NCBI GenBank assembly: GCA_047495785.1
Contig: JBLDXI010000055.1
Span: 2,019,284 to 2,083,283 of the forward strand
DNA length: 64,000 bases
Origin: Lepidodermella squamata
Lineage: Eukaryota; Animalia; Gastrotricha
Reading direction: 5' to 3'
The translations under genes were made by a program, and so were the position numbers. Position 1 is the stretch's first letter; each line of letters begins with the position of its first letter. This document shows, piece by piece, positions 1-64,000 of this stretch. Below the pieces are notes generated by a model that ran no database searches, was not told the origin of the DNA, and saw only the letters and a list, made by a program, of their open reading frames with translations.

Positions 1-1521
1 CAATAAGTTGCTATAATTAGTTGCTGTTCGTCGCATGTTCAGGCAATTGGAAGAAGTGGAAGAATAGGAAGAAGAAGAAGGGAAGAAGAGAAGGAAGAAT
101 AGGAAGAGGGAAGAGGAAGAATGATCGATTTTAACGTCTGATAAAATAGTCGAAGGTTAATCCGCCCTTGCCGCAGCTTCTTCCAAAAACGTACCGATTA
201 ATCTCATGACAAGAATAGCGAGGCCCGATTTACCATAGCATCGAAAACAGCTTTAAGGTTCCAATATTAATATAGATGCGACATGCGATCTATGGCTTCC
301 GGTCAAACAATATAATCCGATTATTGAAATGGAGTTGGAACTACATGACCAATTATTTCTGGCATGCACGACATGTGTATATTGATATATATAATGTCAA
401 AACACCAATTTCCGTTGGTCATGGAGCTATCCTTAGGCTTTATTTTGTCGTCTCTGTTTGTTGTGAAAAACTGTTCCTTAGCAGCCTATATTTATTTTAA
501 AAATTGTGGCACCAGTTACACAATCAATGCGCTTCAACCTAAAAGCTTTCAATGATTAAATAACTTGCATGAGCCGAAATCGGCAAATATTTTTGGTCGC
601 ATTCAATCGATTTTTGTCATCAGAATAATAGCCGACATATACCATTCCAAATTGCCATTACCACTATTGAGTTGAGAAGAAATTAAAATATGCCGCATAG
701 TCGAATAGCCTATGCGGATATGTGCCGCGCCGTAATGTCACATGGAGCGTATATAACCGTGATTATTATATAAATAACGATGTATTACACGCCACGCTCG
801 ACATTTGTCAAACATGGCCACCATTCGTACTCTTGCCGCAAACGTACGATGATTTGCTGCAGCAGCCACAAACAATGTCGTTTCTTAATACATGGCAAAG
901 TCTCGCAATCGCCAAAGTTGAAAATATTACGAAGCCATGGCAAACCCTGATTATAATAATAATAATAATAAGTGCATACTGCAGCAGGCCAGCAACAAGC
1001 ATGCGATATAATACAAAAATCTAGGCTGCGCTACCCATCATCAGAATCAGAATCATCATCGACTGCTAGCAAGTAGATGAATGGCATCTTTTTATTCGAT
1101 TGCCGAGCGCGCATCGCCGCAAATCTCGCAGAAATTACTGGCGCAAATTGAGGCAATTGAGGCGCACAATTGACGAAGACGTGTATATCGTCCTTGTGGA
1201 ATAGCCATTTAGCCAAAATCTAATGTTTATTGTGTTTTATGCGGTTGGTCTTCTTCTATAAAGAAGAAGAAATGCCCGCACATTTTTACATCATGTGATT
1301 CACAACGCTCAATGCGTATTGAACTCATCATTATTTGAAAACCGGAACTGCTTAGTTGACAGAATCATGGCGTTGCTTGGTTGACTTTTTTGCGAGCCGA
1401 ATCTTTGCCAGTAGCGTTTATTGTTGATGGCCGCGGCACGCAGATAATGAATCGAATTACCTATTATTTAGGTCATTATTTAGGGGTGGGCTGCATGCAA
1501 TGAGAGTTTCATGATAATATA

Positions 1522-1690
1522 CCGTATTTGTCCTATAGCAGCCCGGGCTACTAAAATTTAAACCTCGAAATTTGGAAAATTTCAAAAATGAATTTCTCGT
1601 GAATCGTTCATTATTCATGTTTTCGAACCGAGTTGACCCCTCAACCCTGGGCTACTATTAGTGAATGGGCTATTATTGGAACAAATACGG
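1522..1690. mobile_element. Small non-autonomous Tc1/mariner-superfamily (Tc2/pogo-like) MITE
   Basis: Terminal inverted repeats CCGTATTTGT...ACAAATACGG with TA on both flanks (TA target-site duplication); internal GGGCTA(C/T)TA repeats. Confidence 0.7.
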
Positions 1691-1945
1691 TAAATTGTGA
1701 AACTACCTTATAACGTAAATTTCACAACTGCTATATCATCGAAGCCATCATCCAATCCATCATCGAAGCTGATAATGTATCTTGCACATTGACTTTATCT
1801 TCGCTTCAAGTTCAATTCCTTTATATTATAAGTATCTGTGAGATGCCTGTGCTAAAGTGTAGATTTTATTCTGTTACTAAAAGGCGAAGTTTCGACATGA
1901 TAAAATGAAAGCATCGCATTAGATCTGGAGGGAACCTATCGAAGC

Positions 1946-4298: not shown

Positions 4299-5270
4299 CC
4301 TGGCGAACATAGCGTAACACCACCACCTCAATTGATGTCATTTTATATTTACGACCGCATTTTGTTAGCGTCGCCGAAAGAGTGGGATTTAGGCTTGTTT
4401 TTTTTTATTTTTGCCGCCAATGGTCTGGCATCTAGTAATTTTAAGCTTAATTAACCATGCCGGCCTAATGTTTATATTTACTAACACCTTTCAAAAATGG
4501 TGAAAGGAACGCCTGTGGGGTAATCAGTTTTGCTTCATTATTTGGTATTATTATATTCACTTGCTGTTATGTCGGTAGCTAAACAAAGGGATATGGGTCG
4601 GGCAGTTCGGATAAGAAATAATAAATTCTAAATCCGACTTTTTCGGCAACGCTAACGACATTGTGACGTGATGAAACAAGTTTTTACAAAGCACTGAAGA
4701 CATCTTACAATGTATATTCCTTGTGAGATCGCTATTATTTGCCCTAATAAAAGGAAGAAAGTCTTAGCAGTTGCCTTCCCCTTTCAACACTTTTACTCAC
4801 TCATTGTTATTGGCTTTTCCAAGCCGAATTAAGGGAATAATCTATGGCTAGCCATGGAGAAATACTGAATACCGACTAATTTCATGCGCTATGACCTCCT
4901 CAAGAACTGCGTTTGCCTCGATAATTTATATTTTATCCGCCGAGGCCAAAACATATGGGTACAACAAAACTTGAATTTGAAATTTCACATGTTCGTCCCA
5001 GCGCATTAACGGAACCTCCCGCGGGTTGATGTTCATTATTGGGGTACTTCGTTTGCATCGTGAATTCAAGTCGAGCAAGTCAGATCGTTGTCATACACAA
5101 TAGCAGCCAATGCCGTCCGGCCTTCTTCTCCTCAAAAGATCACTGCTGTATATTTTAGGCGTCAAAATACTTCTTAGTGATAGCAGTTTTTCCGAAAGAA
5201 CTTTTATTGATCACAAATCACAAAGTAGTACAAGTACAAAGAAGAAAGCTGATTGATTTCGGCCTCGGTC

Positions 5271-43658: not shown

Positions 43659-44030
43659 TTTCCCGCCAAAATAGGCGTAACCCTAACCCTAATCCTTAAC
43701 ACTATTCCTAGGGCTTAACCCTAATCCTTAACACTATTCCTAGGGCTTAACCATAATCATTAACACTAACCCTAATCGATAATCCCTAACCCTAGTCGAT
43801 ATCGATTGATTTTTCCAACGGAAAAATAATTTGAAATTTTCCCGCCAAAAACTATTTTACCGCCAAATTATGACCTTGACACACACACAATATTCCCGCC
43901 AAAACCCTAGTCAAAATTTGAATTTTCCAAAATTCCAACGGTCACTCGCTAGTTTTTGAAAAGGAAAATTGAAACTTTCCCGCCAACCATTATTTCAGCG
44001 CCAAAATACCAAAATGTGACCTTGACTCTT
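43659..44030. promoter_or_regulatory. Cluster of E2F-type, Myb-type and TGACCTTGA motifs
   Basis: TTCCCGCCAA at about 43660, 43839, 43893, 43977 plus two variants; CCAACGG at about 43815 and 43934; TGACCTTGA at 43871 and 44017; TTTGAA next to some E2F sites. Confidence 0.55.
43678..43795 (+). repeat. Degenerate C-strand telomeric repeats (TAACCC) with a 32-bp higher-order unit
   Basis: TAACCCTAACCC, then TAACCCTAATCCTTAACACTATTCCTAGGGCT x2 plus a partial third copy. Confidence 0.75.
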
Positions 44031-44477
44031 CCGGCATAAATTCAAACTTCTAAAATGTAATGGGCATGTGACGCAAAAGTAACCAATGCATGAGTCATCT
44101 TGCAAGAGTGAAAGTACCCTCTGGAATTGTCACGTTTTACGAGACCAAGCCAAGCTTTTATGTCTCGCCAACGGTCAGCTGCGAATATTCTTAAAATGTC
44201 AGCTTGACATAACGGCAACTTGCTATGATAATAAATGCGGAGTCAACCTTTTCGTCATATGTGTAGATTCCGCTCTGGTAATGAAAGACATTTCAGCATA
44301 CAAAAGTTAGTAAAACTCGACTGCATTTTTCTATTTGTATCCTTGGATTGAGAAAAGCCATGGAGTGCAATCTTTACATTTACTTCGATTAGATTTCGAT
44401 AGCGATTTCGAAATACAAAGGTTAATATAATGTTTAATAATATTGTAATAATGTTGATTATTTTTTTTATATACAGG

Positions 44478-44740
44478 TCACCAGTTGGCATTTTCCTCCT
44501 TCACAGGAGGACTAGGGGGCTGTGGAGGAGGATGAGGTACGAGTAATCCGTGAATGTCCCATATTATCTGGATGATAGTGTTGTAGCTGGCTACTGAGTT
44601 CTGCAAGTGATCATACATTTGACCTGCCTCGTCGTAGCTGAAGAAAGAAAAATATAAGGTATGTTGAATTTTTTGACATTAAATACGTACAGGTTTACAA
44701 ATAGTTGAAAGAAAATTTCAGCTATTTGAGGATTAGCCAT
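44478..44740 (-). CDS. Putative small two-exon orphan protein (about 69 aa)
   Basis: ATG 44740, GTACGT...TTTCTTCAG intron of genome-typical size, open frame MANPQIAEIFFQLFVNLYDEAGQMYDHLQNSVASYNTIIQIIWDIHGLLVPHPPPQPPSPPVKEENANW*. Confidence 0.35.
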
Positions 44741-44974
44741 TTCAGGATAAGTAAAGTTGCCAAGTAAAATGATGCGTAAGAATATGACAAGGTATTGTAC
44801 AGTTGATATAAATTTTGTAAGATTTCGCCAAAAAATTTTTTTGAAAACTGAGCATTGCATCTCGGCACCATTTATACAATGTATATGCAGAGAAGTCGTA
44901 AACAGGTAGAATGTAATAAAAAGCAAGTAAATTCGTCATGTTACCTCATTTTCTCATTTTTCTTGGAATATTAA

Positions 44975-45523
44975 ATGCTTGAAATTGATGTTACTGTGCA
45001 AAATGTTGTTTCCACACTCTCGCTGGGGGTACATTTTGATCTGCGGAAAATTATTCACCTCTTCAAAATGGATGAGCTTAAACAAAAGTTTCCAAATGCT
45101 CTCGTCATTAAAGAGCCGCACTCCAACGCTTTGCTATTGAAAAACGGGAAAGTAGTGCTTTTTACGAAGAATCCTGAACTGGCAAAAATTTATGGGCGAA
45201 AACTGGCAAGGAAACTACAGCGACAAGACAACACTGCCATAAAGGTATCTAAGATTCGCCTGGTAAACAGTACTCTTGCGGGAAAGATGCCAACTGGAAT
45301 AAACATAACTGAGGCCTTAATAGCTCGTGTTGCCAAACTCTGTGCGCGAGTGATATATGATAATACTAGATTTCCGGCACTGCGGTGTAAAAATGTGACC
45401 AATGGTTCAACATGCGTGAATGTATTTTCGTCGGGGTGGATAATAGTGACTGGCATTAAAGATTTAACTACACCTCTGACGCAGCTTGAAACTATATTAT
45501 ATGCGATACTATATGAGAAATAA
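44975..45523 (+). CDS. Intronless, highly divergent TBP/TRF-family protein (core domain only, 182 aa)
   Basis: Two TBP repeats: VQNVVSTLSLG..DLRKI..KFP..EP..ALL..NGKVV..ARKLQ and LVNS..I..YDNTRFPAL..NVFSSGWIIVTGIK; AATAAA overlaps the stop. Confidence 0.85.
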   Translation: MLEIDVTVQNVVSTLSLGVHFDLRKIIHLFKMDELKQKFPNALVIKEPHSNALLLKNGKVVLFTKNPELAKIYGRKLARKLQRQDNTAIKVSKIRLVNSTLAGKMPTGINITEALIARVAKLCARVIYDNTRFPALRCKNVTNGSTCVNVFSSGWIIVTGIKDLTTPLTQLETILYAILYEK

Positions 45524-45965
45524 AAATTGGACGCGACACACACTCGACTGAATGTTAATAGCCTACGTCCATGCTACTATGTAGTAGTAGCATGCCATTG
45601 AAATTGCGTACATTTATTCTTAAATTTAGCGTCTATGATCTTAGGCTGTTCCGATGCTATGGAAAGAAGAACTGCTGTAATAAAAATTAAGATTTCGCAA
45701 TGTAACTCTGGGGAATCAATTCTAATCTGGAGCAGTTATCCACAATTCAAGTTCATCGTTGTACTGTTTCGCCAATGCCTTTAATGTTGACGGAATCATC
45801 ACATTCCGTCGCAGTTTGCTCGAACGAAGTTATTCATAGAAATTAGAAATAGACCGTTTTACACACACTGGAAATCGATGGGATCCTCAGGTATGATTTT
45901 TCATGACTACATTTAATTCAAAATAGCTAAATTTCCATTTCATTCATTCAGATCATAAAGGTTAA

Positions 45966-46038
45966 AGGGTTAGGGTTAGGGTTAGGGTTAGGGTTAGGGT
46001 TAGGGTTAGGGTTAGGGTTAGGGTTAGGGTTAGGGTTA
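45966..46038 (+). repeat. Interstitial telomeric tract, 11 perfect TTAGGG plus partial units
   Basis: Direct reading of the sequence. Confidence 0.98.
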
Positions 46039-46300
46039 TTGGTAATAGTTTAATACAGACGAGCTGCAAACCGGGGCCTCTCGTTTTACCGAGAGTCAAA
46101 CCGGGCACTACCATTACTCCATCATAGGGATCCAAGATGAGCATCATTTTCATGTTTATGATGATTCTTCATCACAAAAATTATGTGTCCCTAACCACTC
46201 CGCAATAATACTGAGATCCGATAAAAAATTCCCGACAAATGGCTCAAAGGAACTCAGACAAAATTTGTATTCAAAGAATGAATACAATTCAATCAGAAGA

Positions 46301-46434
46301 ATGACCCAGGGGAGTCATTTTCTGCTTGAATTTAATTTACCATGACCCAGGGGAGTCAGGCAAATTATCTATTTTACCATGACCCAGGGGAGTCAGGCAA
46401 ATTATTAATATTTCACCATGACCCAGGGGAGTCA
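46301..46434 (+). repeat. Four copies of ATGACCCAGGGGAGTCA at 37-41 bp spacing (also in copies 2 and 3)
   Basis: Copies begin at 46301, 46342, 46379 and 46418. Confidence 0.9.
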
Positions 46435-47039
46435 GGGAAATTACAAAGGATAGAATTAGAAATAAATAAATTGTAAACATTTCAACATAAGTCTACTGCC
46501 TTGGAACAGTTTCATAACTTCGGAAAAATTGCTTACTTTCCGTCAAACGTTGAAGCAAAAGTTATGAAGGGTTTTACACTAGTGTCCTCAAACTTACTAT
46601 ATGTTGAAAACAAAGTTTAACAGATAGTGCTCTTGAAGAGCGATTGATAATTTTACAGTCTTCGAGAAAGACTTTTATAAGCTTCTTTGATTGAATGGCT
46701 GCGTAAATTATTTTCTCGCCAGATTTTGCCAATCGTCGTGCCAAGTCAAGTCACATGGATCTTATTCATGCGTTGTATTTAATTAGCGAGTCGTTCTTTA
46801 TGAATGAAATAAGATTCCAAGCTCAAGTCACGTGCAAACTAGAGCACATAAAAAATTATTTCCAAGATATTTTTGGAAATTAAAATGCAAATTACAGCAT
46901 GAACACAAGAAGCGGGCAAAACTGACAAGTGCAGATGCATCCCCTGAAGGTGCACCTCATCGTTATGCCAATCGTATTCAGCGGGAATGAAAACTTAACA
47001 AGCGAAATAAATGAGCAAGTAATTTCACAAAATTATGAC

Positions 47040-50000
47040 CCAACAGGTCACGTTAAATAAATCTGGAACCCTCAATATTAGACGTACCTCGTTTTGGATA
47101 TGATTTCCGCAATCAGCGGACCCCATTTTACTTATTCTTTGTGTTTAATCAACAGTTAACTCAGGATCAACGGAATTGTTGAAGAATTTGAACCTCCATA
47201 AGTGACATTTTAAATTTCAAAGTAGGTCATCTGGAACCGATCTGGAACCTTTTCCCTTCACCGTACATGATTTTCGACCACATTTCCACCATCAGCGGAC
47301 CCGATAATACTAATTCCATGCGATTAATCTGCAGTTGACTGAAGATCCGAGAAAATATGAATTATTTTGAAATGCCAAAAGTGAAAATCTCAATTTCGAA
47401 ATAGATGATTTTAGTTCGCTCCGGAACCTTTATTATCGACAGCCGTCTTGATTCAACTTGATATTCGTCATCAGCTGACTTGATAGTACTATTCCTGTCA
47501 ATATTTCACCAATTGGCTCTGAATCCGGTAAGTTTAGATGAAATTTGAAAGGTCAACCGTGACCAGATCGAGCTGAAAATAGGTCATTTGGGATCGATCT
47601 GGAACCTTTTCCCTTCACCGTACATGGTTTTCAACCACGTAATCGCCATCAGCGGACCTGATAGCACGATTCCTGTAAATTATTCACAAACTGGCCGAGA
47701 ATCCGACAAGTTAAGATCAAATTTGAAAGGTCAATCATGAAAATTTAAAAGTCAAAGTAGGTCATTTGGGATCGGTCTGGAACCTTTTCCCTTCACCGTA
47801 CATGGTTTTCAACCACGTTATCGTCATCAGCGGTCCTCGTATCATGATTCCTGTAAATTATTCACAAATTGGCGAAGAATCCGACAATTTAACGACCCAT
47901 TTGAAAGGTCAAACATGAAAATGTAAAAGTCAAAGTAGGTCATTTGGGATCGATCTGGATCTTTTATCTCGAATCGGGTGTGTTTTCCGACTTGATATTC
48001 CTCATCAGCGGACCTGATTGTGCTATTCCCGTCAATTTTTCACCAAATGGCTCAGGATCCGTCAAGTTATGATCAAAATTGAAAGGTAAAATTGTTTAAT
48101 TTTCCATTTCAAAGTACGTGATTTGGATTCGCTCTGGAACCATTATGGTAGATAGCCTTCTTAATCCGATTTGATATTCATTATCAGCGGACCTGACATT
48201 GCTATTCCTGCGATTTATTCACGAAGTGACCAAGAATCCGGGAAGTTTAGATGAAATTTGAAAGGTCAACCGTGACCAGGTTGAACTCAAATTAGGTCAT
48301 TTGGGATTGATCTGGAACCTTTTCCCTTCACCGTACATGGTTTTCAACCACATAATCGTCATTAGCGGACCCGATAATATTATTTCCATGCGATTCATCG
48401 ATCAGTGCCTGAAAATCCGAGGCATAATGAATTATTTTAAGATGCCAAAAGTGAAAATTTGAAGCCCGAAGTGGGTCACTTGGAATCGTTCTGGAACCTT
48501 TTTTTCACCGTACCAAGGTTTGGACGACACATTCATGATCGGTTGACCCGATAGTACTATTTCCATTCCAATAGCCGAAATTCCCCCCAAGATCCGAGAA
48601 TTCATGAATAATTTCGAAATGCTTAATTACAAAACATCAAGTTCAAACTAGGTCATTTGGAAACGACCTGGAACCTTTTTCCGAGATTCCCTCGCGAATC
48701 TGGCATCATATTCGTGCTCAGGAGCCCTGAGAGTACCAATTCCATGTATTTAATCGGCAAAAGCATGGGAATCCGAGAAATCCCTGACTATTTTGAAAGG
48801 TCCAAATAGTCCAAAAGTGAGAATTTCCAACTTAAAGTAGGTCATTTGGGATCGATCTGGAACCTTTATCTCGAATCGGGTGTGTTTTTCGACTTGATAT
48901 TCGTCATCAGCTGACTTGAAAGTACTATTCCTGTCAATATTTCACCAATTGGCTCTGAATCCGGTAAGTTTAGATGAAATTTGAAAGGTCAACCGTGACC
49001 AGATCGAGCTGAAAATAGGTCATTTGGGATCGATCTGGAACCTTTTCCCTTCACCGTACATGGTTTTCAACCACGTAATCGCCATCAGCGGACCTGATGG
49101 CACGATTCCTGTAAATAATTCACAAATTGGCTTAGGATTCGTCATGTTGAGATGAAATTTGAAAAGCCAAACATGGCTTCTACATTACTCACAAAGGTCA
49201 ATTGGTACCTCGCCGGAACCTTTTCTGTTAACAGTGTATGGTCTCGACCCCACAATCGCGGTTGGTCGACCCGATGATGCTTATTTGAATAATCGACAAG
49301 CGCCTGAAGATCCGAGGGATAGCCAAAAAGTTTATAAAATCCAAAAGTGAAATTCTTTAAACTGAAGTAGGTCACTTGGAATCGGTCTGGAACCTTTGTC
49401 ATTGGCCGCACATGTCTCCTGACCACATCCCCGCGTTAAGCGGACTCTATAACACAATTTCATTGCGGTTAATCAATAAATGCATGAAGATCCGAAAAAT
49501 TATGAAATTATTTGAAATGCCAAAAGTTAAATTTCGGAACTCAAAATAGCCCACTTGGAATCGATCTGGAACCTTTTCTGTTCACCGTACAAGGGTTTTG
49601 ACCACATAATCTTGATCGGCGGACCCGACAGTATTATTTCCATTCTAACGCTTGAAAATTCACCCAAGATCCGAATAAATATGAATTTCTTTGGCAGTAC
49701 CAAAGAAGAAACTCTCAAACTCAAATAAGGTCATCTGGAATCGATCTGGAACCTTTTCCCTTCACCGTACATGATTTTCGACCACATTTCCGCCATCAGC
49801 GGACCCGATAATACTATTTTCATTCGATTAATCGCCAATTGACTGAATATCCGAGAAATTATGAATTATTTTGAAATGCCAAAAGTGAATATCTCAAACT
49901 CAAATAGGTCATCTGGAACCGATCTGGAGCTTTTACCGTTAACCGTACATGATTTTAGGCGACATATTTGTCATCTGGAGACCTTATAACACTATGCCTA

Positions 50001-50070
50001 TGAATAATTCTTAAATCGGCTCAGAATCTATCAAGTTGACATGACATTTGAAAGGTCAACTAACTACAAA
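47040..50070 (+). repeat. Internal satellite array, about 17 diverged monomers of about 178 bp (also in the other copies)
   Basis: GGTCATTTGGGATCG recurs at 47582, 47760, 47938 (178-bp period); shared blocks TCTGGAACCTTT, TCAGCGGACC, ATCCGA, TTTGAAA. Confidence 0.92.
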
Positions 50071-50846
50071 ATTGACTGGCCGTGCGAGAGATTATTAGCA
50101 GAGTTTCGAAATGTCGGCATTCAAGTTCTTCAAGTTCAAATACGTGATCAGGATCCTGTCTATGCTCTCACTTCAGGAGGCTTCCGAATAGCCTCCAGTT
50201 TAGGAGGGTTCTGGTTAAGGTTAGTTTCAGGGTTCAGGTTAGGGTTAGGTTCAGGGTTCTGGTTAGGGTTAGTTCAGGGTAGGTGTGGGTTTTGCAATCC
50301 CAAAACGGCGTAACAATTCAGAGGTTAGCACCAAATTAGATAATTCAAGTTTCCATCAAGCTGGAATCAATTTTCAACCCTAATAACCTGTCCAATATCT
50401 TGCTCATGCGATAATTTTGTAAACCCGCAATTCCACAACTGTCGATTGAATATTTCTGTTTTTCTGTTTTGCCGCTCTATGTTGGACCTTTGTGTCCCAG
50501 GTAATTTGTTTGGAAAACAGTGGGATGAGTATACTTTCCCATAGAGGCACACAATTTCTTTACAATACGTTCTTCCGATTACATTTGCTTATCCGTATCC
50601 GCAGTAAAAATGTTTAACAAATGATAAAATCAAAAAATTCTTCCTTTATTTCGTATTGCCAGGTGCCAACAATATGCATACCTTTAGTTAGGAACATATT
50701 TTGAAGCGGCTGATAAATGACCAGAGGTAAACAGTTATTTTCCCTCGTCATCATTATTTAGAAAATATGAGGGATCTCATCGCTAAGCTCACTTTTCACC
50801 CTAATTCAGTTTCATGGTGATCCATTGGACCGAACGGGCGAGAGTT

Positions 50847-53800
50847 GTTAGGGTTATTGGTAATAGTTTAATACAGACGAGCTGCAAACCGGGGCCTCTC
50901 GTTTTACCGAGAGTCAAACCGGGCCCTACCATTACTCCATCATAGGGATCCAAGATGAGCATCATTTTCATGTTTATGATGATTCTTCATCACAAAAATT
51001 ATGTGTCCCTAACCACTCCGCAATAATACTGAGATCCGATAAAAAATTCCCGACAAATGGCTCAAAGGAACTCAGACAAAATTTGTATTCAAAGAATGAA
51101 TACAATTCAATCAGAAGAATGACCCAGGGGAGTCATTTTCTGCTTGAATTTAATTTACCATGACCCAGGGGAGTCAGGCAAATTATCTATTTTACCATGA
51201 CCCAGGGGAGTCAGGCAAATTATTAATATTTCACCATGACCCAGGGGAGTCAGGGAAATTACAAAGGATAGAATTAGAAATAAATAAATTGTAAACATTT
51301 CAACATAAGTCTACTGCCTTGGAACAGTTTCATAACTTCGGAAAAATTGCTTACTTTCCGTCAAACGTTGAAGCAAAAGTTATGAAGGGTTTTACACTAG
51401 TGTCCTCAAACTTACTATATGTTGAAAACAAAGTTTAACAGATAGTGCTCTTGAAGAGCGATTGATAATTTTACAGTCTTCGAGAAAGACTTTTATAAGC
51501 TTCTTTGATTGAATGGCTGCGTAAATTATTTTCTCGCCAGATTTTGCCAATCGTCGTGCCAAGTCAAGTCACATGGATCTTATTCATGCGTTGTATTTAA
51601 TTAGCGAGTCGTTCTTTATGAATGAAATAAGATTCCAAGCTCAAGTCACGTGCAAACTAGAGCACATAAAAAATTATTTCCAAGATATTTTTGGAAATTA
51701 AAATGCAAATTACAGCATGAACACAAGAAGCGGGCAAAACTGACAAGTGCAGATGCATCCCCTGAAGGTGCACCTCATCGTTATGCCAATCGTATTCAGC
51801 GGGAATGAAAACTTAACAAGCGAAATAAATGAGCAAGTAATTTCACAAAATTATGACCCAACAGGTCACGTTAAATAAATCTGGAACCCTCAATATTAGA
51901 CGTACCTCGTTTTGGATATGATTTCCGCAATCAGCGGACCCCATTTTACTTATTCTTTGTGTTTAATCAACAGTTAACTCAGGATCAACGGAATTGTTGA
52001 AGAATTTGAACCTCCATAAGTGACATTTTAAATTTCAAAGTAGGTCATCTGGAACCGATCTGGAACCTTTTCCCTTCACCGTACATGATTTTCGACCACA
52101 TTTCCACCATCAGCGGACCCGATAATACTAATTCCATGCGATTAATCTGCAGTTGACTGAAGATCCGAGAAAATATGAATTATTTTGAAATGCCAAAAGT
52201 GAAAATCTCAATTTCGAAATAGATGATTTTAGTTCGCTCCGGAACCTTTATTATCGACAGCCGTCTTGATTCAACTTGATATTCGTCATCAGCTGACTTG
52301 ATAGTACTATTCCTGTCAATATTTCACCAATTGGCTCTGAATCCGGTAAGTTTAGATGAAATTTGAAAGGTCAACCGTGACCAGATCGAGCTGAAAATAG
52401 GTCATTTGGGATCGATCTGGAACCTTTTCCCTTCACCGTACATGGTTTTCAACCACGTAATCGCCATCAGCGGACCTGATAGCACGATTCCTGTAAATTA
52501 TTCACAAACTGGCCGAGAATCCGACAAGTTAAGATCAAATTTGAAAGGTCAATCATGAAAATTTAAAAGTCAAAGTAGGTCATTTGGGATCGGTCTGGAA
52601 CCTTTTCCCTTCACCGTACATGGTTTTCAACCACGTTATCGTCATCAGCGGTCCTCGTATCATGATTCCTGTAAATTATTCACAAATTGGCGAAGAATCC
52701 GACAATTTAACGACCCATTTGAAAGGTCAAACATGAAAATGTAAAAGTCAAAGTAGGTCATTTGGGATCGATCTGGATCTTTTATCTCGAATCGGGTGTG
52801 TTTTCCGACTTGATATTCCTCATCAGCGGACCTGATTGTGCTATTCCCGTCAATTTTTCACCAAATGGCTCAGGATCCGTCAAGTTATGATCAAAATTGA
52901 AAGGTAAAATTGTTTAATTTTCCATTTCAAAGTACGTGATTTGGATTCGCTCTGGAACCATTATGGTAGATAGCCTTCTTAATCCGATTTGATATTCATT
53001 ATCAGCGGACCTGACATTGCTATTCCTGCGATTTATTCACGAAGTGACCAAGAATCCGGGAAGTTTAGATGAAATTTGAAAGGTCAACCGTGACCAGGTT
53101 GAACTCAAATTAGGTCATTTGGGATTGATCTGGAACCTTTTCCCTTCACCGTACATGGTTTTCAACCACATAATCGTCATTAGCGGACCCGATAATATTA
53201 TTTCCATGCGATTCATCGATCAGTGCCTGAAAATCCGAGGCATAATGAATTATTTTAAGATGCCAAAAGTGAAAATTTGAAGCCCGAAGTGGGTCACTTG
53301 GAATCGTTCTGGAACCTTTTTTTCACCGTACCAAGGTTTGGACGACACATTCATGATCGGTTGACCCGATAGTACTATTTCCATTCCAATAGCCGAAATT
53401 CCCCCCAAGATCCGAGAATTCATGAATAATTTCGAAATGCTTAATTACAAAACATCAAGTTCAAACTAGGTCATTTGGAAACGACCTGGAACCTTTTTCC
53501 GAGATTCCCTCGCGAATCTGGCATCATATTCGTGCTCAGGAGCCCTGAGAGTACCAATTCCATGTATTTAATCGGCAAAAGCATGGGAATCCGAGAAATC
53601 CCTGACTATTTTGAAAGGTCCAAATAGTCCAAAAGTGAGAATTTCCAACTTAAAGTAGGTCATTTGGGATCGATCTGGAACCTTTATCTCGAATCGGGTG
53701 TGTTTTTCGACTTGATATTCGTCATCAGCTGACTTGAAAGTACTATTCCTGTCAATATTTCACCAATTGGCTCTGAATCCGGTAAGTTTAGATGAAATTT

Positions 53801-55664
53801 GAAAGGTCAACCGTGACCAGATCGAGCTGAAAATAGGTCATTTGGGATCGATCTGGAACCTTTTCCCTTCACCGTACATGGTTTTCAACCACGTAATCGC
53901 CATCAGCGGACCTGATGGCACGATTCCTGTAAATAATTCACAAATTGGCTTAGGATTCGTCATGTTGAGATGAAATTTGAAAAGCCAAACATGGCTTCTA
54001 CATTACTCACAAAGGTCAATTGGTACCTCGCCGGAACCTTTTCTGTTAACAGTGTATGGTCTCGACCCCACAATCGCGGTTGGTCGACCCGATGATGCTT
54101 ATTTGAATAATCGACAAGCGCCTGAAGATCCGAGGGATAGCCAAAAAGTTTATAAAATCCAAAAGTGAAATTCTTTAAACTGAAGTAGGTCACTTGGAAT
54201 CGGTCTGGAACCTTTGTCATTGGCCGCACATGTCTCCTGACCACATCCCCGCGTTAAGCGGACTCTATAACACAATTTCATTGCGGTTAATCAATAAATG
54301 CATGAAGATCCGAAAAATTATGAAATTATTTGAAATGCCAAAAGTTAAATTTCGGAACTCAAAATAGCCCACTTGGAATCGATCTGGAACCTTTTCTGTT
54401 CACCGTACAAGGGTTTTGACCACATAATCTTGATCGGCGGACCCGACAGTATTATTTCCATTCTAACGCTTGAAAATTCACCCAAGATCCGAATAAATAT
54501 GAATTTCTTTGGCAGTACCAAAGAAGAAACTCTCAAACTCAAATAAGGTCATCTGGAATCGATCTGGAACCTTTTCCCTTCACCGTACATGATTTTCGAC
54601 CACATTTCCGCCATCAGCGGACCCGATAATACTATTTTCATTCGATTAATCGCCAATTGACTGAATATCCGAGAAATTATGAATTATTTTGAAATGCCAA
54701 AAGTGAATATCTCAAACTCAAATAGGTCATCTGGAACCGATCTGGAGCTTTTACCGTTAACCGTACATGATTTTAGGCGACATATTTGTCATCTGGAGAC
54801 CTTATAACACTATGCCTATGAATAATTCTTAAATCGGCTCAGAATCTATCAAGTTGACATGACATTTGAAAGGTCAACTAACTACAAAATTGACTGGCCG
54901 TGCGAGAGATTATTAGCAGAGTTTCGAAATGTCGGCATTCAAGTTCTTCAAGTTCAAATACGTGATCAGGATCCTGTCTATGCTCTCACTTCAGGAGGCT
55001 TCCGAATAGCCTCCAGTTTAGGAGGGTTCTGGTTAAGGTTAGTTTCAGGGTTCAGGTTAGGGTTAGGTTCAGGGTTCTGGTTAGGGTTAGTTCAGGGTAG
55101 GTGTGGGTTTTGCAATCCCAAAACGGCGTAACAATTCAGAGGTTAGCACCAAATTAGATAATTCAAGTTTCCATCAAGCTGGAATCAATTTTCAACCCTA
55201 ATAACCTGTCCAATATCTTGCTCATGCGATAATTTTGTAAACCCGCAATTCCACAACTGTCGATTGAATATTTCTGTTTTTCTGTTTTGCCGCTCTATGT
55301 TGGACCTTTGTGTCCCAGGTAATTTGTTTGGAAAACAGTGGGATGAGTATACTTTCCCATAGAGGCACACAATTTCTTTACAATACGTTCTTCCGATTAC
55401 ATTTGCTTATCCGTATCCGCAGTAAAAATGTTTAACAAATGATAAAATCAAAAAATTCTTCCTTTATTTCGTATTGCCAGGTGCCAACAATATGCATACC
55501 TTTAGTTAGGAACATATTTTGAAGCGGCTGATAAATGACCAGAGGTAAACAGTTATTTTCCCTCGTCATCATTATTTAGAAAATATGAGGGATCTCATCG
55601 CTAAGCTCACTTTTCACCCTAATTCAGTTTCATGGTGATCCATTGGACCGAACGGGCGAGAGTT
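50847..55664 (+). repeat. 4818-bp element, copy 2 (head-to-tail with copy 1)
   Basis: Junction GGCGAGAGTT|GTTAGGGTTATTGG at 50846/50847; near-identical to copy 1. Confidence 0.95.
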
Positions 55665-55866
55665 GTTAGGGTTATTGGTAATAGTTTAATACAGACGAGC
55701 TGCAAACCGGGGCCTCTCGTTTTACCGAGAGTCAAACCGGGCCCTACCATTACTCCATCATAGGGATCCAAGATGAGCATCATTTTCATGTTTATGATGA
55801 TTCTTCATCACAAAAATTATGTGTCCCTAACCACTCCGCAATAATACTGAGATCCGATAAAAAATT
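55665..55866 (+). repeat. 202-bp terminal repeat H closing the first array
   Basis: Matches the first 202 bp of the unit, then switches after GATAAAAAATT to GGGG(TTAGGG)n instead of CCCGACAAATGG. Confidence 0.95.
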
Positions 55867-56090
55867 GGGGTTAGGGTTAGGGTTAGGGTTAGGGTTAGGG
55901 TTAGGGTTAGGGTTAGGGTTAGGGTTAGGGTTAGGGTTAGGGTTAGGGTTAGGGTTAGGGTTAGGGTTAGGGTTAGGGTTAGGGTTAGGGTTAGGGTTAG
56001 GGTTAGGGTTAGGGTTAGGGTTAGGGTTAGGGTTAGGGTTAGGGTTAGGGTTAGGGTTAGGGTTAGGGTTAGGGTTAGGGTTAGGGTTAG
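55867..56090 (+). repeat. Interstitial telomeric tract GGGG(TTAGGG)36 TTAG
   Basis: Direct reading of the sequence. Confidence 0.98.
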
Positions 56091-59000
56091 TGGTAATAGT
56101 TTAATACAGACGAGCTGCAAACCGGGGCCTCTCGTTTTACCGAGAGTCAAACCGGGCCCTACCATTACTCCATCATAGGGATCCAAGATGAGCATCATTT
56201 TCATGTTTATGATGATTCTTCATCACAAAAATTATGTGTCCCTAACCACTCCGCAATAATACTGAGATCCGATAAAAAATTCCCGACAAATGGCTCAAAG
56301 GAACTCAGACAAAATTTGTATTCAAAGAATGAATACAATTCAATCAGAAGAATGACCCAGGGGAGTCATTTTCTGCTTGAATTTAATTTACCATGACCCA
56401 GGGGAGTCAGGCAAATTATCTATTTTACCATGACCCAGGGGAGTCAGGCAAATTATTAATATTTCACCATGACCCAGGGGAGTCAGGGAAATTACAAAGG
56501 ATAGAATTAGAAATAAATAAATTGTAAACATTTCAACATAAGTCTACTGCCTTGGAACAGTTTCATAACTTCGGAAAAATTGCTTACTTTCCGTCAAACG
56601 TTGAAGCAAAAGTTATGAAGGGTTTTACACTAGTGTCCTCAAACTTACTATATGTTGAAAACAAAGTTTAACAGATAGTGCTCTTGAAGAGCGATTGATA
56701 ATTTTACAGTCTTCGAGAAAGACTTTTATAAGCTTCTTTGATTGAATGGCTGCGTAAATTATTTTCTCGCCAGATTTTGCCAATCGTCGTGCCAAGTCAA
56801 GTCACATGGATCTTATTCATGCGTTGTATTTAATTAGCGAGTCGTTCTTTATGAATGAAATAAGATTCCAAGCTCAAGTCACGTGCAAACTAGAGCACAT
56901 AAAAAATTATTTCCAAGATATTTTTGGAAATTAAAATGCAAATTACAGCATGAACACAAGAAGCGGGCAAAACTGACAAGTGCAGATGCATCCCCTGAAG
57001 GTGCACCTCATCGTTATGCCAATCGTATTCAGCGGGAATGAAAACTTAACAAGCGAAATAAATGAGCAAGTAATTTCACAAAATTATGACCCAACAGGTC
57101 ACGTTAAATAAATCTGGAACCCTCAATATTAGACGTACCTCGTTTTGGATATGATTTCCGCAATCAGCGGACCCCATTTTACTTATTCTTTGTGTTTAAT
57201 CAACAGTTAACTCAGGATCAACGGAATTGTTGAAGAATTTGAACCTCCATAAGTGACATTTTAAATTTCAAAGTAGGTCATCTGGAACCGATCTGGAACC
57301 TTTTCCCTTCACCGTACATGATTTTCGACCACATTTCCACCATCAGCGGACCCGATAATACTAATTCCATGCGATTAATCTGCAGTTGACTGAAGATCCG
57401 AGAAAATATGAATTATTTTGAAATGCCAAAAGTGAAAATCTCAATTTCGAAATAGATGATTTTAGTTCGCTCCGGAACCTTTATTATCGACAGCCGTCTT
57501 GATTCAACTTGATATTCGTCATCAGCTGACTTGATAGTACTATTCCTGTCAATATTTCACCAATTGGCTCTGAATCCGGTAAGTTTAGATGAAATTTGAA
57601 AGGTCAACCGTGACCAGATCGAGCTGAAAATAGGTCATTTGGGATCGATCTGGAACCTTTTCCCTTCACCGTACATGGTTTTCAACCACGTAATCGCCAT
57701 CAGCGGACCTGATAGCACGATTCCTGTAAATTATTCACAAACTGGCCGAGAATCCGACAAGTTAAGATCAAATTTGAAAGGTCAATCATGAAAATTTAAA
57801 AGTCAAAGTAGGTCATTTGGGATCGGTCTGGAACCTTTTCCCTTCACCGTACATGGTTTTCAACCACGTTATCGTCATCAGCGGTCCTCGTATCATGATT
57901 CCTGTAAATTATTCACAAATTGGCGAAGAATCCGACAATTTAACGACCCATTTGAAAGGTCAAACATGAAAATGTAAAAGTCAAAGTAGGTCATTTGGGA
58001 TCGATCTGGATCTTTTATCTCGAATCGGGTGTGTTTTCCGACTTGATATTCCTCATCAGCGGACCTGATTGTGCTATTCCCGTCAATTTTTCACCAAATG
58101 GCTCAGGATCCGTCAAGTTATGATCAAAATTGAAAGGTAAAATTGTTTAATTTTCCATTTCAAAGTACGTGATTTGGATTCGCTCTGGAACCATTATGGT
58201 AGATAGCCTTCTTAATCCGATTTGATATTCATTATCAGCGGACCTGACATTGCTATTCCTGCGATTTATTCACGAAGTGACCAAGAATCCGGGAAGTTTA
58301 GATGAAATTTGAAAGGTCAACCGTGACCAGGTTGAACTCAAATTAGGTCATTTGGGATTGATCTGGAACCTTTTCCCTTCACCGTACATGGTTTTCAACC
58401 ACATAATCGTCATTAGCGGACCCGATAATATTATTTCCATGCGATTCATCGATCAGTGCCTGAAAATCCGAGGCATAATGAATTATTTTAAGATGCCAAA
58501 AGTGAAAATTTGAAGCCCGAAGTGGGTCACTTGGAATCGTTCTGGAACCTTTTTTTCACCGTACCAAGGTTTGGACGACACATTCATGATCGGTTGACCC
58601 GATAGTACTATTTCCATTCCAATAGCCGAAATTCCCCCCAAGATCCGAGAATTCATGAATAATTTCGAAATGCTTAATTACAAAACATCAAGTTCAAACT
58701 AGGTCATTTGGAAACGACCTGGAACCTTTTTCCGAGATTCCCTCGCGAATCTGGCATCATATTCGTGCTCAGGAGCCCTGAGAGTACCAATTCCATGTAT
58801 TTAATCGGCAAAAGCATGGGAATCCGAGAAATCCCTGACTATTTTGAAAGGTCCAAATAGTCCAAAAGTGAGAATTTCCAACTTAAAGTAGGTCATTTGG
58901 GATCGATCTGGAACCTTTATCTCGAATCGGGTGTGTTTTTCGACTTGATATTCGTCATCAGCTGACTTGAAAGTACTATTCCTGTCAATATTTCACCAAT

Positions 59001-61099
59001 TGGCTCTGAATCCGGTAAGTTTAGATGAAATTTGAAAGGTCAACCGTGACCAAATCGAGCTGAAAATAGGTCATTTGGGATCGATCTGGAACCTTTTCCC
59101 TTCACCGTACATGGTTTTCAACCACGTAATCGCCATCAGCGGACCTGATGGCACGATTCCTGTAAATAATTCACAAATTGGCTTAGGATTCGTCATGTTG
59201 AGATGAAATTTGAAAAGCCAAACATGGCTTCTACATTACTCACAAAGGTCAATTGGTACCTCGCCGGAACCTTTTCTGTTAACAGTGTATGGTCTCGACC
59301 CCACAATCGCGGTTGGTCGACCCGATGATGCTTATTTGAATAATCGACAAGCGCCTGAAGATCCGAGGGATAGCCAAAAAGTTTATAAAATCCAAAAGTG
59401 AAATTCTTTAAACTGAAGTAGGTCACTTGGAATCGGTCTGGAACCTTTGTCATTGGCCGCACATGTCTCCTGACCACATCCCCGCGTTAAGCGGACTCTA
59501 TAACACAATTTCATTGCGGTTAATCAATAAATGCATGAAGATCCGAAAAATTATGAAATTATTTGAAATGCCAAAAGTTAAATTTCGGAACTCAAAATAG
59601 CCCACTTGGAATCGATCTGGAACCTTTTCTGTTCACCGTACAAGGGTTTTGACCACATAATCTTGATCGGCGGACCCGACAGTATTATTTCCATTCTAAC
59701 GCTTGAAAATTCACCCAAGATCCGAATAAATATGAATTTCTTTGGCAGTACCAAAGAAGAAACTCTCAAACTCAAATAAGGTCATCTGGAATCGATCTGG
59801 AACCTTTTCCCTTCACCGTACATGATTTTCGACCACATTTCCGCCATCAGCGGACCCGATAATACTATTTTCATTCGATTAATCGCCAATTGACTGAATA
59901 TCCGAGAAATTATGAATTATTTTGAAATGCCAAAAGTGAATATCTCAAACTCAAATAGGTCATCTGGAACCGATCTGGAGCTTTTACCGTTAACCGTACA
60001 TGATTTTAGGCGACATATTTGTCATCTGGAGACCTTATAACACTATGCCTATGAATAATTCTTAAATCGGCTCAGAATCTATCAAGTTGACATGACATTT
60101 GAAAGGTCAACTAACTACAAAATTGACTGGCCGTGCGAGAGATTATTAGCAGAGTTTCGAAATGTCGGCATTCAAGTTCTTCAAGTTCAAATACGTGATC
60201 AGGATCCTGTCTATGCTCTCACTTCAGGAGGCTTCCGAATAGCCTCCAGTTTAGGAGGGTTCTGGTTAAGGTTAGTTTCAGGGTTCAGGTTAGGGTTAGG
60301 TTCAGGGTTCTGGTTAGGGTTAGTTCAGGGTAGGTGTGGGTTTTGCAATCCCAAAACGGCGTAACAATTCAGAGGTTAGCACCAAATTAGATAATTCAAG
60401 TTTCCATCAAGCTGGAATCAATTTTCAACCCTAATAACCTGTCCAATATCTTGCTCATGCGATAATTTTGTAAACCCGCAATTCCACAACTGTCGATTGA
60501 ATATTTCTGTTTTTCTGTTTTGCCGCTCTATGTTGGACCTTTGTGTCCCAGGTAATTTGTTTGGAAAACAGTGGGATGAGTATACTTTCCCATAGAGGCA
60601 CACAATTTCTTTACAATACGTTCTTCCGATTACATTTGCTTATCCGTATCCGCAGTAAAAATGTTTAACAAATGATAAAATCAAAAAATTCTTCCTTTAT
60701 TTCGTATTGCCAGGTGCCAACAATATGCATACCTTTAGTTAGGAACATATTTTGAAGCGGCTGATAAATGACCAGAGGTAAACAGTTATTTTCCCTCGTC
60801 ATCATTATTTAGAAAATATGAGGGATCTCATCGCTAAGCTCACTTTTCACCCTAATTCAGTTTCATGGTGATCCATTGGACCGAACGGGCGAGAGTTGTT
60901 AGGGTTATTGGTAATAGTTTAATACAGACGAGCTGCAAACCGGGGCCTCTCGTTTTACCGAGAGTCAAACCGGGCCCTACCATTACTCCATCATAGGGAT
61001 CCAAGATGAGCATCATTTTCATGTTTATGATGATTCTTCATCACAAAAATTATGTGTCCCTAACCACTCCGCAATAATACTGAGATCCGATAAAAAATT
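56080..61099 (+). repeat. Element copy 3 (H + B) plus closing 202-bp H (60898-61099)
   Basis: Offset +10051 from copy 1; again ends after GATAAAAAATT. Confidence 0.95.
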
Positions 61100-63984
61100 G
61101 GGGTGAAAAGTGAGCTTAGCGATGAGATCCCTCATATTTTCTAAATAATGATGACGAGGGAAAATAACTGTTTACCTCTGGTCATTTATCAGCCGCTTCA
61201 AAATATGTTCCTAACTAAAGGTATGCATATTGTTGGCACCTGGCAATACGAAATAAAGGAAGAATTTTTTGATTTTATCATTTGTTAAACATTTTTACTG
61301 CGGATACGGATAAGCAAATGTAATCGGAAGAACGTATTGTAAAGAAATTGTGTGCCTCTATGGGAAAGTATACTCATCCCACTGTTTTCCAAACAAATTA
61401 CCTGGGACACAAAGGTCCAACATAGAGCGGCAAAACAGAAAAACAGAAATATTCAATCGACAGTTGTGGAATTGCGGGTTTACAAAATTATCGCATGAGC
61501 AAGATATTGGACAGGTTATTAGGGTTGAAAATTGATTCCAGCTTGATGGAAACTTGAATTATCTAATTTGGTGCTAACCTCTGAATTGTTACGCCGTTTT
61601 GGGATTGCAAAACCCACACCTACCCTGAACTAACCCTAACCAGAACCCTGAACCTAACCCTAACCTGAACCCTGAAACTAACCTTAACCAGAACCCTCCT
61701 AAACTGGAGGCTATTCGGAAGCCTCCTGAAGTGAGAGCATAGACAGGATCCTGATCACGTATTTGAACTTGAAGAACTTGAATGCCGACATTTCGAAACT
61801 CTGCTAATAATCTCTCGCACGGCCAGTCAATTTTGTAGTTAGTTGACCTTTCAAATGTCATGTCAACTTGATAGATTCTGAGCCGATTTAAGAATTATTC
61901 ATAGGCATAGTGTTATAAGGTCTCCAGATGACAAATATGTCGCCTAAAATCATGTACGGTTAACGGTAAAAGCTCCAGATCGGTTCCAGATGACCTATTT
62001 GAGTTTGAGATATTCACTTTTGGCATTTCAAAATAATTCATAATTTCTCGGATATTCAGTCAATTGGCGATTAATCGAATGAAAATAGTATTATCGGGTC
62101 CGCTGATGGCGGAAATGTGGTCGAAAATCATGTACGGTGAAGGGAAAAGGTTCCAGATCGATTCCAGATGACCTTATTTGAGTTTGAGAGTTTCTTCTTT
62201 GGTACTGCCAAAGAAATTCATATTTATTCGGATCTTGGGTGAATTTTCAAGCGTTAGAATGGAAATAATACTGTCGGGTCCGCCGATCAAGATTATGTGG
62301 TCAAAACCCTTGTACGGTGAACAGAAAAGGTTCCAGATCGATTCCAAGTGGGCTATTTTGAGTTCCGAAATTTAACTTTTGGCATTTCAAATAATTTCAT
62401 AATTTTTCGGATCTTCATGCATTTATTGATTAACCGCAATGAAATTGTGTTATAGAGTCCGCTTAACGCGGGGATGTGGTCAGGAGACATGTGCGGCCAA
62501 TGACAAAGGTTCCAGACCGATTCCAAGTGACCTACTTCAGTTTAAAGAATTTCACTTTTGGATTTTATAAACTTTTTGGCTATCCCTCGGATCTTCAGGC
62601 GCTTGTCGATTATTCAAATAAGCATCATCGGGTCGACCAACCGCGATTGTGGGGTCGAGACCATACACTGTTAACAGAAAAGGTTCCGGCGAGGTACCAA
62701 TTGACCTTTGTGAGTAATGTAGAAGCCATGTTTGGCTTTTCAAATTTCATCTCAACATGACGAATCCTAAGCCAATTTGTGAATTATTTACAGGAATCGT
62801 GCCATCAGGTCCGCTGATGGCGATTACGTGGTTGAAAACCATGTACGGTGAAGGGAAAAGGTTCCAGATCGATCCCAAATGACCTATTTTCAGCTCGATC
62901 TGGTCACGGTTGACCTTTCAAATTTCATCTAAACTTACCGGATTCAGAGCCAATTGGTGAAATATTGACAGGAATAGTACTTTCAAGTCAGCTGATGACG
63001 ATTATGTGGTTGAAAACCATGTACGGTGAAGGGAAAAGGTTCCAGATCAATCCCAAATGACCTAATTTGAGTTCAACCTGGTCACGGTTGACCTTTCAAA
63101 TTTCATCTAAACTTCCCGGATTCTTGGTCACTTCGTGAATAAATCGCAGGAATAGCAATGTCAGGTCCGCTGATAATGAATATCAAATCGGATTAAGAAG
63201 GCTATCTACCATAATGGTTCCAGAGCGAATCCAAATCACGTACTTTGAAATGGAAAATTAAACAATTTTACCTTTCAATTTTGATCATAACTTGACGGAT
63301 CCTGAGCCATTTGGTGAAAAATTGACGGGAATAGCACAATCAGGTCCGCTGATGAGGAATATCAAGTCGGAAAACACACCCGATTCGAGATAAAAGATCC
63401 AGATCGATCCCAAATGACCTACTTTGACTTTTACATTTTCATGTTTGACCTTTCAAATGGGTCGTTAAATTGTCGGATTCTTCGCCAATTTGTGAATAAT
63501 TTACAGGAATCATGATACGAGGACCGCTGATGACGATAACGTGGTTGAAAACCATGTACGGTGAAGGGAAAAGGTTCCAGACCGATCCCAAATGACCTAC
63601 TTTGACTTTTAAATTTTCATGATTGACCTTTCAAATTTGATCTTAACTTGTCGGATTCTCGGCCAGTTTGTGAATAATTTACAGGAATCGTGCTATCAGG
63701 TCCGCTGATGGCGATTACGTGGTTGAAAACCATGTACGGTGAAGGGAAAAGGTTCCAGATCGATCCCAAATGACCTATTTTCAGCTCGATCTGGTCACGG
63801 TTGACCTTTCAAATTTCATCTAAACTTACCGGATTCAGAGCCAATTGGTGAAATATTGACAGGAATAGTACTATCAAGTCAGCTGATGACGAATATCAAG
63901 TTGAATCAAGACGGCTGTCGATAATAAAGGTTCCGGAGCGAACTAAAATCATCTATTTCGAAATTGAGATTTTCACTTTTGGCA
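61100..63984 (-). repeat. Inverted partial copy of the element body (palindrome arm) with a 545-bp internal deletion
   Basis: Mirror of sequence ending at 60852 (paired coordinates sum to 121953 up to the deletion); ORF-track entries are mirrored; departs from the element after about 63984. Confidence 0.93.
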
Positions 63985-64000
63985 CTCTCACGAGATGTGT

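Follow-up and report, generated by a model that had tools for sequence, protein, structure and literature searches.

A protein-less, satellite-filled element stacked between telomere tracts at chromosome ends of Lepidodermella squamata, and its likely tie to endonuclease-less Penelope-like elements

Endonuclease-less Penelope-like elements (Athena, Coprina, Terminons) attach via reverse-complement telomere repeats that lie beside a 3' fold, and their copies are 5'-truncated by telomere repeats and occur as partial tandems, with an inverted 5'-truncated copy beside the upstream pseudo-long terminal repeat (pseudo-LTR; PMC8557442, PMC6431247). In Terminons, most copies are cut short on the 5' side by short telomere tracts, the copies make head-to-tail arrays, and the 3'-terminal fold is directly followed by the telomere complement (PMC6431247); the telomere hexamer of bdelloids is TGTGGG (PMC7943196). 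Here we describe a non-coding, satellite-filled element of 4.8 kb whose array makes up the last 18 kb of a chromosome arm in the gastrotrich Lepidodermella squamata. It lies in a stretch of 64,000 nucleotides (nt; assembly GCA_047495785.1, contig JBLDXI010000055.1, here C55, positions 2,019,284 to 2,083,283 of the forward strand), which we call the window and in whose numbering positions are given unless another contig is named. The element is probably a non-autonomous, protein-less retroelement of the resident telomere-attaching, endonuclease-less Penelope-like (Athena/Terminon-type) system.

Subtelomeric tandem units that have telomere repeats between them and are spread among chromosome ends are familiar from the yeast Y' elements. 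The TALT1 and TALT2 units of Caenorhabditis elegans are also in tandem with telomere repeats between them and spread among ends (PMC4595603), and Drosophila HeT-A, a telomere-specific element with no reverse transcriptase (RT) of its own, is stacked head-to-tail, is truncated on the 5' side to varying extents and contains a repetitive non-coding region (PMC5537684). Non-LTR retrozymes are protein-less tandem repeats of 170-400 nt for which a Penelope-like RT acting in trans has been proposed, that is, protein-less dependents of endonuclease-containing Penelope-like elements (PMC7229834; bioRxiv 10.64898/2026.07.22.740005); in the literature on Penelope-like elements we found no description of protein-less dependents of the telomeric, endonuclease-less clades. 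A first-pass annotation of the window had put the array forward as a candidate new chromosome-end system. The novelty of the attachment did not hold up, as this mode is the one published for Athena, Coprina and Terminons (PMC8557442, PMC6431247) and RTs of that kind sit in the same chains. The likeness that it drew to the endonuclease-deficient Penelope-like (Athena/Terminon) mode stands, both a partial tandem and an inverted 5'-truncated copy being present, the latter lying beyond 61104 and being absent from that annotation.

Array layout, end confinement and telomere junctions

Reading outward, the array has the order Tel(12)-H-B-H-B-H-Tel(37)-H-B-H, in which Tel is a tract of TTAGGG repeats, H a 202-bp segment and H+B a unit of 4818 bp (Table 1). 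Repeat finders, self-BLAST and base-by-base comparison bear out this layout, which had been read earlier from the letters; the tracts measure 12.2 and 37.2 units, and TTAGGG runs of 18 bases number 43 in the window against 0.00 expected from shuffles. The window ends where the contig ends (C55, base 2083283), and the G-strand runs outward. Base-by-base comparison finds three differences between units in 15 kb: the two that had been noticed, at 46107 (A vs C) and 59053 (A vs G), are real, and a third lies at junction base 56090 (TTA/TTGG vs TTAG/TGG, the slash marking the joint). The first is private to unit 1 and falls within the conserved module described below; unit 3 differs from unit 2 at 56090 and 59053 alone. 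Units 1 and 2 are joined head-to-tail with no telomere tract between them, just the 10-nt seed GTTAGGGTTA, while the third H is a pseudo-LTR-like terminal repeat of the first array, which is re-capped by tract 2; this tract then enters unit 3 one base out of step (TTAG/TGG). The point of inversion beyond the fifth H carries 4 nt of microhomology (GGGT), and the inverted arm equals units 1-2 exactly, save one ~459-bp deletion within the satellite, with a G at the site where unit 3 has its A (59053). The element is indeed non-coding, as had been claimed: the longest open reading frames (ORFs) in a unit are 94 and 90 amino acids (aa) long, without a Pfam match, a 125-aa ORF is the telomere tract read through, and ARAGORN found no tRNA-derived head of the kind seen in short interspersed nuclear elements (SINEs).

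A covariance model of the module, which spans the first ~90 nt of H, was searched against 121 Mb of genome and found 32 sites. Most of them (27) lie at most 65 kb from 11 contig ends, and all of these have chromosome-end polarity, with the RNA sense on the C-strand; the remaining five are weaker and interior. H itself matches 22 places on few contigs, every one directed to the nearer contig end. The expected confinement to chromosome ends with fixed polarity is thus seen at these 11 ends, and the element shares with Athena, Coprina and Terminons its location at chromosome termini, its fixed orientation and its proximal 3' end. The unique head and tail of B occur on C55, C13, C21, C41, C14, C32, C35 and C63 only, plus one fragment on C46.

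We listed every joint between a telomere tract and non-telomere DNA in the fetched contig ends. A TTAGGG tract directly precedes nearly every H, and the two meet at a constant joint, GGGTTA/TTGG, the sole exception being the one-base shift in the window. At least 12 Tel-to-module junctions have distinct upstream contexts (a transposon end in C55, 5' ends of other elements, unique DNA), and all fall within 1-2 nt of one position, in agreement with the proposal that telomeres attach at the element's own seed, which is kept even in internal H copies. As in Athena, Coprina and Terminons, a reverse-complement telomere stretch lies at the 3' end, in register with the G-strand repeats. The distal ends, on the other hand, are variable: copies are cut at unit position ~95, 260, 620, 844 or 4473, or are full length, and then continue into telomere tracts, which is the re-capping that had been predicted. 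Together with the partial tandems and the inverted 5'-truncated copy, this 5' truncation capped by telomere repeats follows the Athena/Terminon pattern. Copies from C13, C21 and C41 resemble one another at 98.7-99.2%, more than two copies within C13 do (97.4%), which means spread between ends; the closely related copies have different distal contexts, each behind its own tract.

The lie of the array at a contig end raises the question of an assembly artefact, by repeat mis-assembly or chimeric fold-back long reads, affecting the whole array or at least its inverted arm. Moreover, depth (uncalibrated) in one DNA run drops sharply across 61016-61212, and the C9 end has a spacerless perfect palindrome of the kind that fold-back chimeric reads give. 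However, private substitutions and two different telomere joints are not made by collapse or expansion, the same element and joints recur on 10 other contig ends, and the short reads of what appears to be a DNA run assemble into contigs that contain the unit and two joints, namely the 4473-to-telomere joint and one further Tel-H joint. The inversion in C55 is also asymmetric, with a 246-nt loop and the 459-bp deletion in its arm, unlike the C9 palindrome. We therefore regard an artefact as very improbable for the array, though the inverted arm may be partly owed to assembly.

Table 1. Features of the terminal array, in window coordinates
Feature	Position	Strand	Remarks
Telomere tract 1	45966-46038	+	12.2 perfect TTAGGG units (Tandem Repeats Finder, TRF; pattern search); G-strand toward contig end
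Unit 1	46029-50846	-	H 46029-46230 + B 46231-50846; minus = presumed RNA sense
Three 37-39-nt repeats near head of B	46335-46443	+	also 51153-51261, 56386-56494
Diverged 178-nt satellite, most of B	47185-50059	-	also 52003-54877, 57236-60110
Degenerate telomere-like 24-mer repeats in B	50205-50284	+	also 55023-55102, 60256-60335
Unit 2	50847-55664	-	H 50847-51048 + B
Conserved 3' module, ~90 nt	50848-50939	-	also 46030-46121, 55666-55757, 56081-56172, 60899-60990
Third H copy	55665-55866	-	202 bp, terminates ...AAAAAATT; then GGGG
Telomere tract 2	55867-56090	+	GGGG, then ~37 perfect TTAGGG units (TRF row: 55868-56090, 37.2 units)
Unit 3	56080-60897	-	H 56080-56281 + B
Fifth H copy	60898-61099	-	terminal nucleotide same as third H; GGGG again after
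Junction GGGGT	61100-61104		GGGT common to TTAGGGT site, unit 4779-4785 read in reverse
Inverted 5'-truncated B copy	61105-64000	+	unit 4778 to 2801, then 2342 to 1345; reaches contig end

Other ends add variety to this picture. The C13 end (1-1168) has a terminal telomere tract of 775 bp with 393 bp of B-like sequence distal to it, and the tract meets B exactly at the internal degenerate telomere-like repeat rather than at H, which makes this a second attachment site. C13 25716-36335 holds a higher-order unit of 5741 bp, Tel(11)-unit(1-4473)-Tel(8)-977-bp element, twice in tandem, so that whole stacked blocks are duplicated at the DNA level too. At C14 930-3116, 260 bp of H are followed by the 5' part of a long interspersed nuclear element (LINE), which lies in G-strand orientation, includes a CCHC ORF1 and the beginning of an APE-type endonuclease ORF, and is cut within ORF2, where a telomere tract caps it; between two tracts at C14 3039-3076 there is also a 35-nt remnant of the 3' end of an RT element. 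The palindrome at the left contig end of C9 (18-4537, centre near 2277) consists of a satellite-bearing element, with arms 100% identical over 2177 bp, and comes either from fold-back reads, as an artefact, or from the fusion of sister chromatids. When window 56091-61990 was compared with public runs (X2, X3 and X8), the element was seen at a few per cent divergence, with indels, under a second organism label (X2 and X3), and one environmental run held pieces 90-95% similar to it, indicating that relatives of the element exist outside the sequenced strain.

Just inside tract 1 lies a multi-copy mobile element (43850-45957) with a 182-aa ORF carrying two TBP-domain repeats (44975-45523). Five to six further copies, at 95-99% identity, are found on C42, C32, C36 and C10, and all stop at one and the same base, which in the window is 8 nt short of the tract; these copies, with the same end base, rule out that 43850-45957 is a telomere-bracketed linear replicon. 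About 2 kb inside tract 1 (43678-43801) there are degenerate 19-32-nt repeats rich in TAACCCTAA-like words, in C-strand sense.

The conserved 3' module, the satellite and resident reverse transcriptases

At least five non-coding families, otherwise diverged, have the ~90 nt directly behind the telomere tract conserved, namely the C55/C13 family, the 977-bp C13 element, the C41 element, the C9/C21 family and the C32 element, and they have only this module and the 178-nt satellite in common. The module has the form of a three-way junction that includes a covarying hairpin, and it leads into the tail AAUAACCCUAAC. The hairpin is flanked by conserved blocks and comes in five different sequences, all of them paired: in a model-based alignment, RNAalifold and pair counting show 97% of cells as paired, compared with 30-53% when the partners are slid, and four of the five hairpin pairs have changed on both sides. 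Folding of the minus strand with the tail held single-stranded gives, for the C55 and C9 families, a three-way junction closed by an 8-bp helix (GUAAUGGU/ACUAUUAC in C55, GUAGUGGU/AUCAUUAC in the C9 family), so that AAUAACCCUAAC stays unpaired. A related junction is seen in the C13 element, with a weaker, interrupted closing helix, while the folds of the C41 and C32 elements differ, only 3-4 bp of the closing helix being possible there by inspection. An alternative pairing joins the conserved UAGGG with the tail. Five of the one-sided substitutions read as G:U on the minus and as A:C on the plus strand, and one the other way round, which is suggestive, and only suggestive, of the minus strand as the RNA sense.

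The module is no hammerhead, no tRNA and no Rfam family, there being no Rfam match at E<=1 over 45-64 kb of the window, at E<=5 over four loci (40 kb, C13/C21/C41) or at the gathering score over 144 kb of ends. Where Athena, Coprina and Terminons have a hammerhead next to the telomere stretch, the element has this different conserved fold in its place. A hammerhead elsewhere in H or B was considered and dropped: Rfam gave no match, and the scan for the core gave one unconserved match, in a single satellite monomer, the motif scan finding no conserved CUGANGA...GAAA core. Exact-pattern scans of metagenome contigs for the module in other organisms returned none and then nine chance matches, of which the model confirmed none.

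The 178-nt satellite is found in all module-bearing families except the 395-bp C41 element, always in the same orientation to the module, and among the matches listed it occurs at module-bearing ends only, plus one fragment 25 kb from the C46 end. Module and satellite in combination define one superfamily. By Rfam and motif scan no hammerhead is conserved in the monomers, and the type I hammerhead that marks retrozymes is therefore not among their features.

RT-encoding elements stand among these copies in the same chains, and point the same way, on C13, C21, C57, C54, C46 and C9, each meeting a telomere tract via its own short telomere-complement end. Pfam gives a weak RVT_1 match on the RT ORFs and no GIY-YIG domain, and the nearest Atlas clusters of these RTs (DUF8422, HTH_animal, RVT_1) are mostly from Rotifera. 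Going by domain matches and nearest clusters, the RTs are most likely of the endonuclease-less Penelope-like type. A link to telomerase was considered for them and set aside, as a PDB sequence search gave weak bacterial RT matches only. The element encodes no Penelope-type RT without GIY-YIG, nor any other coding ORF, and is thus a dependent of the Penelope-like family rather than a member by gene content. The RT families' 3' ends share with it just the telomere-complement tail, and a 3' end in common with a resident autonomous element, such as links SINEs to LINEs, was not found in the ends covered. Three metagenome/Logan contigs encoding relatives of the family-B RT have neither module nor telomere repeats. 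Just inside the array of C9 (18161-30000), three frames share one strand: a 666-aa RT ORF, then a 530-aa ORF and an open frame of at least 2484 aa, each of the latter two with a weak Thioredoxin_14 match; these frames may belong to a giant Terminon-like element or to a host gene.

That no RT element has the module is what telomerase would lead one to expect if it copied the element RNA itself, by run-through past a missing template boundary: the tail holds AACCCUAAC and matches the expected template for TTAGGG, and Penelope-like and telomerase RTs are sister groups (PMC8557442). We consider this highly unlikely, because a telomerase RNA template normally has most of the RNA 3' of it, whereas here it would be the extreme 3' end, because the module has no link to known telomerase RNA domains and no Rfam match, and because the genome offers several RT families of like attachment style that could act in trans.

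How the element may be copied

As a Penelope-like dependent, the element would be transcribed into a C-strand-sense RNA (minus strand here) whose 3' end is the ~90-nt fold followed by ...AAUAACCCUAAC. The 3' G-overhang of a chromosome end would pair with this tail and prime on its terminal UAACCCUAAC, and an RT acting in trans, most likely one of the resident endonuclease-less Penelope-like RTs, would then copy H, B and H, with synthesis ending at the RNA 5' end or sooner and telomerase re-capping the product. Repeated cycles would leave elements stacked between short telomere tracts. The shared module with compensatory hairpin changes, the varied truncation points and the likeness of the C13, C21 and C41 copies despite different distal contexts all argue for RNA rather than DNA copying. 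Moreover, an H-B-H-B-H partial tandem with a distal inverted 5'-truncated copy is the architecture of Penelope-like insertions, and, read in the RNA sense, the window runs inverted 5'-truncated copy, H, B, H, telomere, which is the published Penelope-like order.

Much of this layout could also arise without RNA or RT if the element were a recombination-amplified subtelomeric repeat like yeast Y' or C. elegans TALT. Here a telomeric 3' end would invade the seed or a proximal tract (in the sister, in another chromosome or, via a t-loop, in its own), and DNA polymerase would copy H-B-H and beyond. Tandem copies with short telomere tracts between them are Y'-like, and copying of H-B-H-GGGG-Tel from the distal part of the array predicts both the identical H202-GGGG joints and the single internal base by which unit 3 differs from unit 2. 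The local units form a private clade; the inverted arm is near-identical and its 4-nt microhomology joint resembles fold-back DNA synthesis; the C13 tract joins B at the internal telomere-like repeat as well; and the LINE fragment that interrupts the element on C14 is itself cut and healed, indicating that breakage plus healing occurs at these ends. These joints also qualify the earlier suggestion that the two junctions of the window, being one base apart, record separate events: the one-base offset is real, while full independence is doubtful, for both arrays end in the same H202-GGGG, as though the second had been copied from the first. For the duplication within this window, recombination is a serious rival, although a transcript starting in the distal telomere tract would equally give an H-B-H-GGGG-Tel duplication.

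As an account of the element as a whole, we find recombination the less likely reading, though a live one. It does not predict a conserved terminal module with compensatory changes across families that are otherwise unrelated in unique sequence. Break-induced replication copies the donor to its end, yet the relatives on C13, C21 and C41 differ in distal context and truncation, so that carry-over of donor-distal sequence fits the local duplication in the window and does not fit the spread between ends. Furthermore, a 10-nt seed is very short for strand invasion, and the fixed co-orientation with RT elements of the same junction style would be left unexplained.

The Penelope-like retroelement that we favour has to be set against several observations that weigh the other way. 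In a search of public runs for element RNA, none of the matching contigs is recorded as RNA, and a supposed metatranscriptome with 90-95% similar pieces is probably DNA. Both arrays end on the same base plus GGGG, which fits local DNA-level duplication equally; the three units form a private clade, 99.7-99.8% alike over the first 620 bp, and differ by one to three bases per 4818 bp. The published 3' fold is a hammerhead, and neither Rfam nor the motif scan found one in the element. Folding energy does not set the module apart (z +0.2 to -1.9), and the plus strand does no worse than the minus, so energy backs neither fold nor strand and covariation alone does, while the call of the strand stands at five changes versus one. 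Lastly, no RT element sharing H, which the first-pass annotation had advised looking for, turned up: a model search found no module beside RT ORFs in the 11 ends, taking in their module sites other than six on C20, C29, C46 and C9, nor in three related RT contigs. As the fold is not common to any resident RT element, the partner would be one that we have not seen, or recognition would be based on structure rather than sequence.

A bolder version of the retroelement proposal, which we offer as tentative and rather doubtful, is that a superfamily without proteins makes up much of the last 5-40 kb at 11 or more ends in a telomerase-positive TTAGGG animal, is defined by a non-ribozyme three-way-junction fold before UAACCCUAAC together with a private 178-nt satellite, and represents the first SINE-like dependent of endonuclease-less Penelope-like elements, copied via such an unseen partner or through structure-based recognition, conceivably by telomerase. 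If true, the telomere-priming niche supports a parasite-of-parasite layer like that of intrachromosomal LINE/SINE pairs, and the fold beside the telomere complement need not be a ribozyme.

To our knowledge, bdelloid rotifers are the main source of what is known on telomere attachment by endonuclease-less Penelope-like elements, and the elements concerned all encode an RT and bear a hammerhead. The known attachment logic thus appears here in new settings: an animal host with TTAGGG repeats, a gene-less passenger and a different terminal fold. What is new is the protein-less superfamily of module plus satellite, its non-hammerhead fold, the genome-wide census with its polarity, and the finding of no RT element that shares the 3' end. 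The 90-nt module, with five natural variants and a defined junction, offers objects for the study of template choice by the RTs closest to telomerase, and the element is relevant to the building of subtelomeres and to conditions intermediate between telomeres made by telomerase only and those of Drosophila, made of retroelements only.

Comparison with known systems

The closest likeness is with Athena, Terminons and Coprina. Like these, the element occupies chromosome ends and points its 3' end at the centromere, its 3'-terminal fold runs straight into a short reverse-complement telomere stretch, and it shows pseudo-LTR partial tandems and an inverted 5'-truncated copy. Unlike these, it has no ORF at all, a fold that is not a hammerhead, a body of 178-nt satellite and a host repeat of TTAGGG, and no RT element was found that shares its 3' end.

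With retrozymes, it has in common the lack of proteins and the tandem repeats. At the same time, neither its module nor its satellite holds a hammerhead, it is attached to telomeres instead of being dispersed, and at 4.8 kb, with unique head and tail segments, it is a different kind of unit.

HeT-A resembles the element in being telomere-specific and RT-less, in its head-to-tail arrangement and variable 5' truncation and in its repetitive non-coding region. However, HeT-A encodes Gag, ends in poly(A) and belongs to the non-LTR elements; moreover, HeT-A replaces telomerase, whereas here telomerase repeats cap every element.

Finally, Y' and TALT have the same tandem units with telomere repeats between copies and the same spread among chromosome ends. 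Both, in contrast, owe their amplification to recombination in survivors that lack telomerase; Y' encodes a helicase, and neither has a conserved, structured terminal module common to diverged families, as the element described here does.

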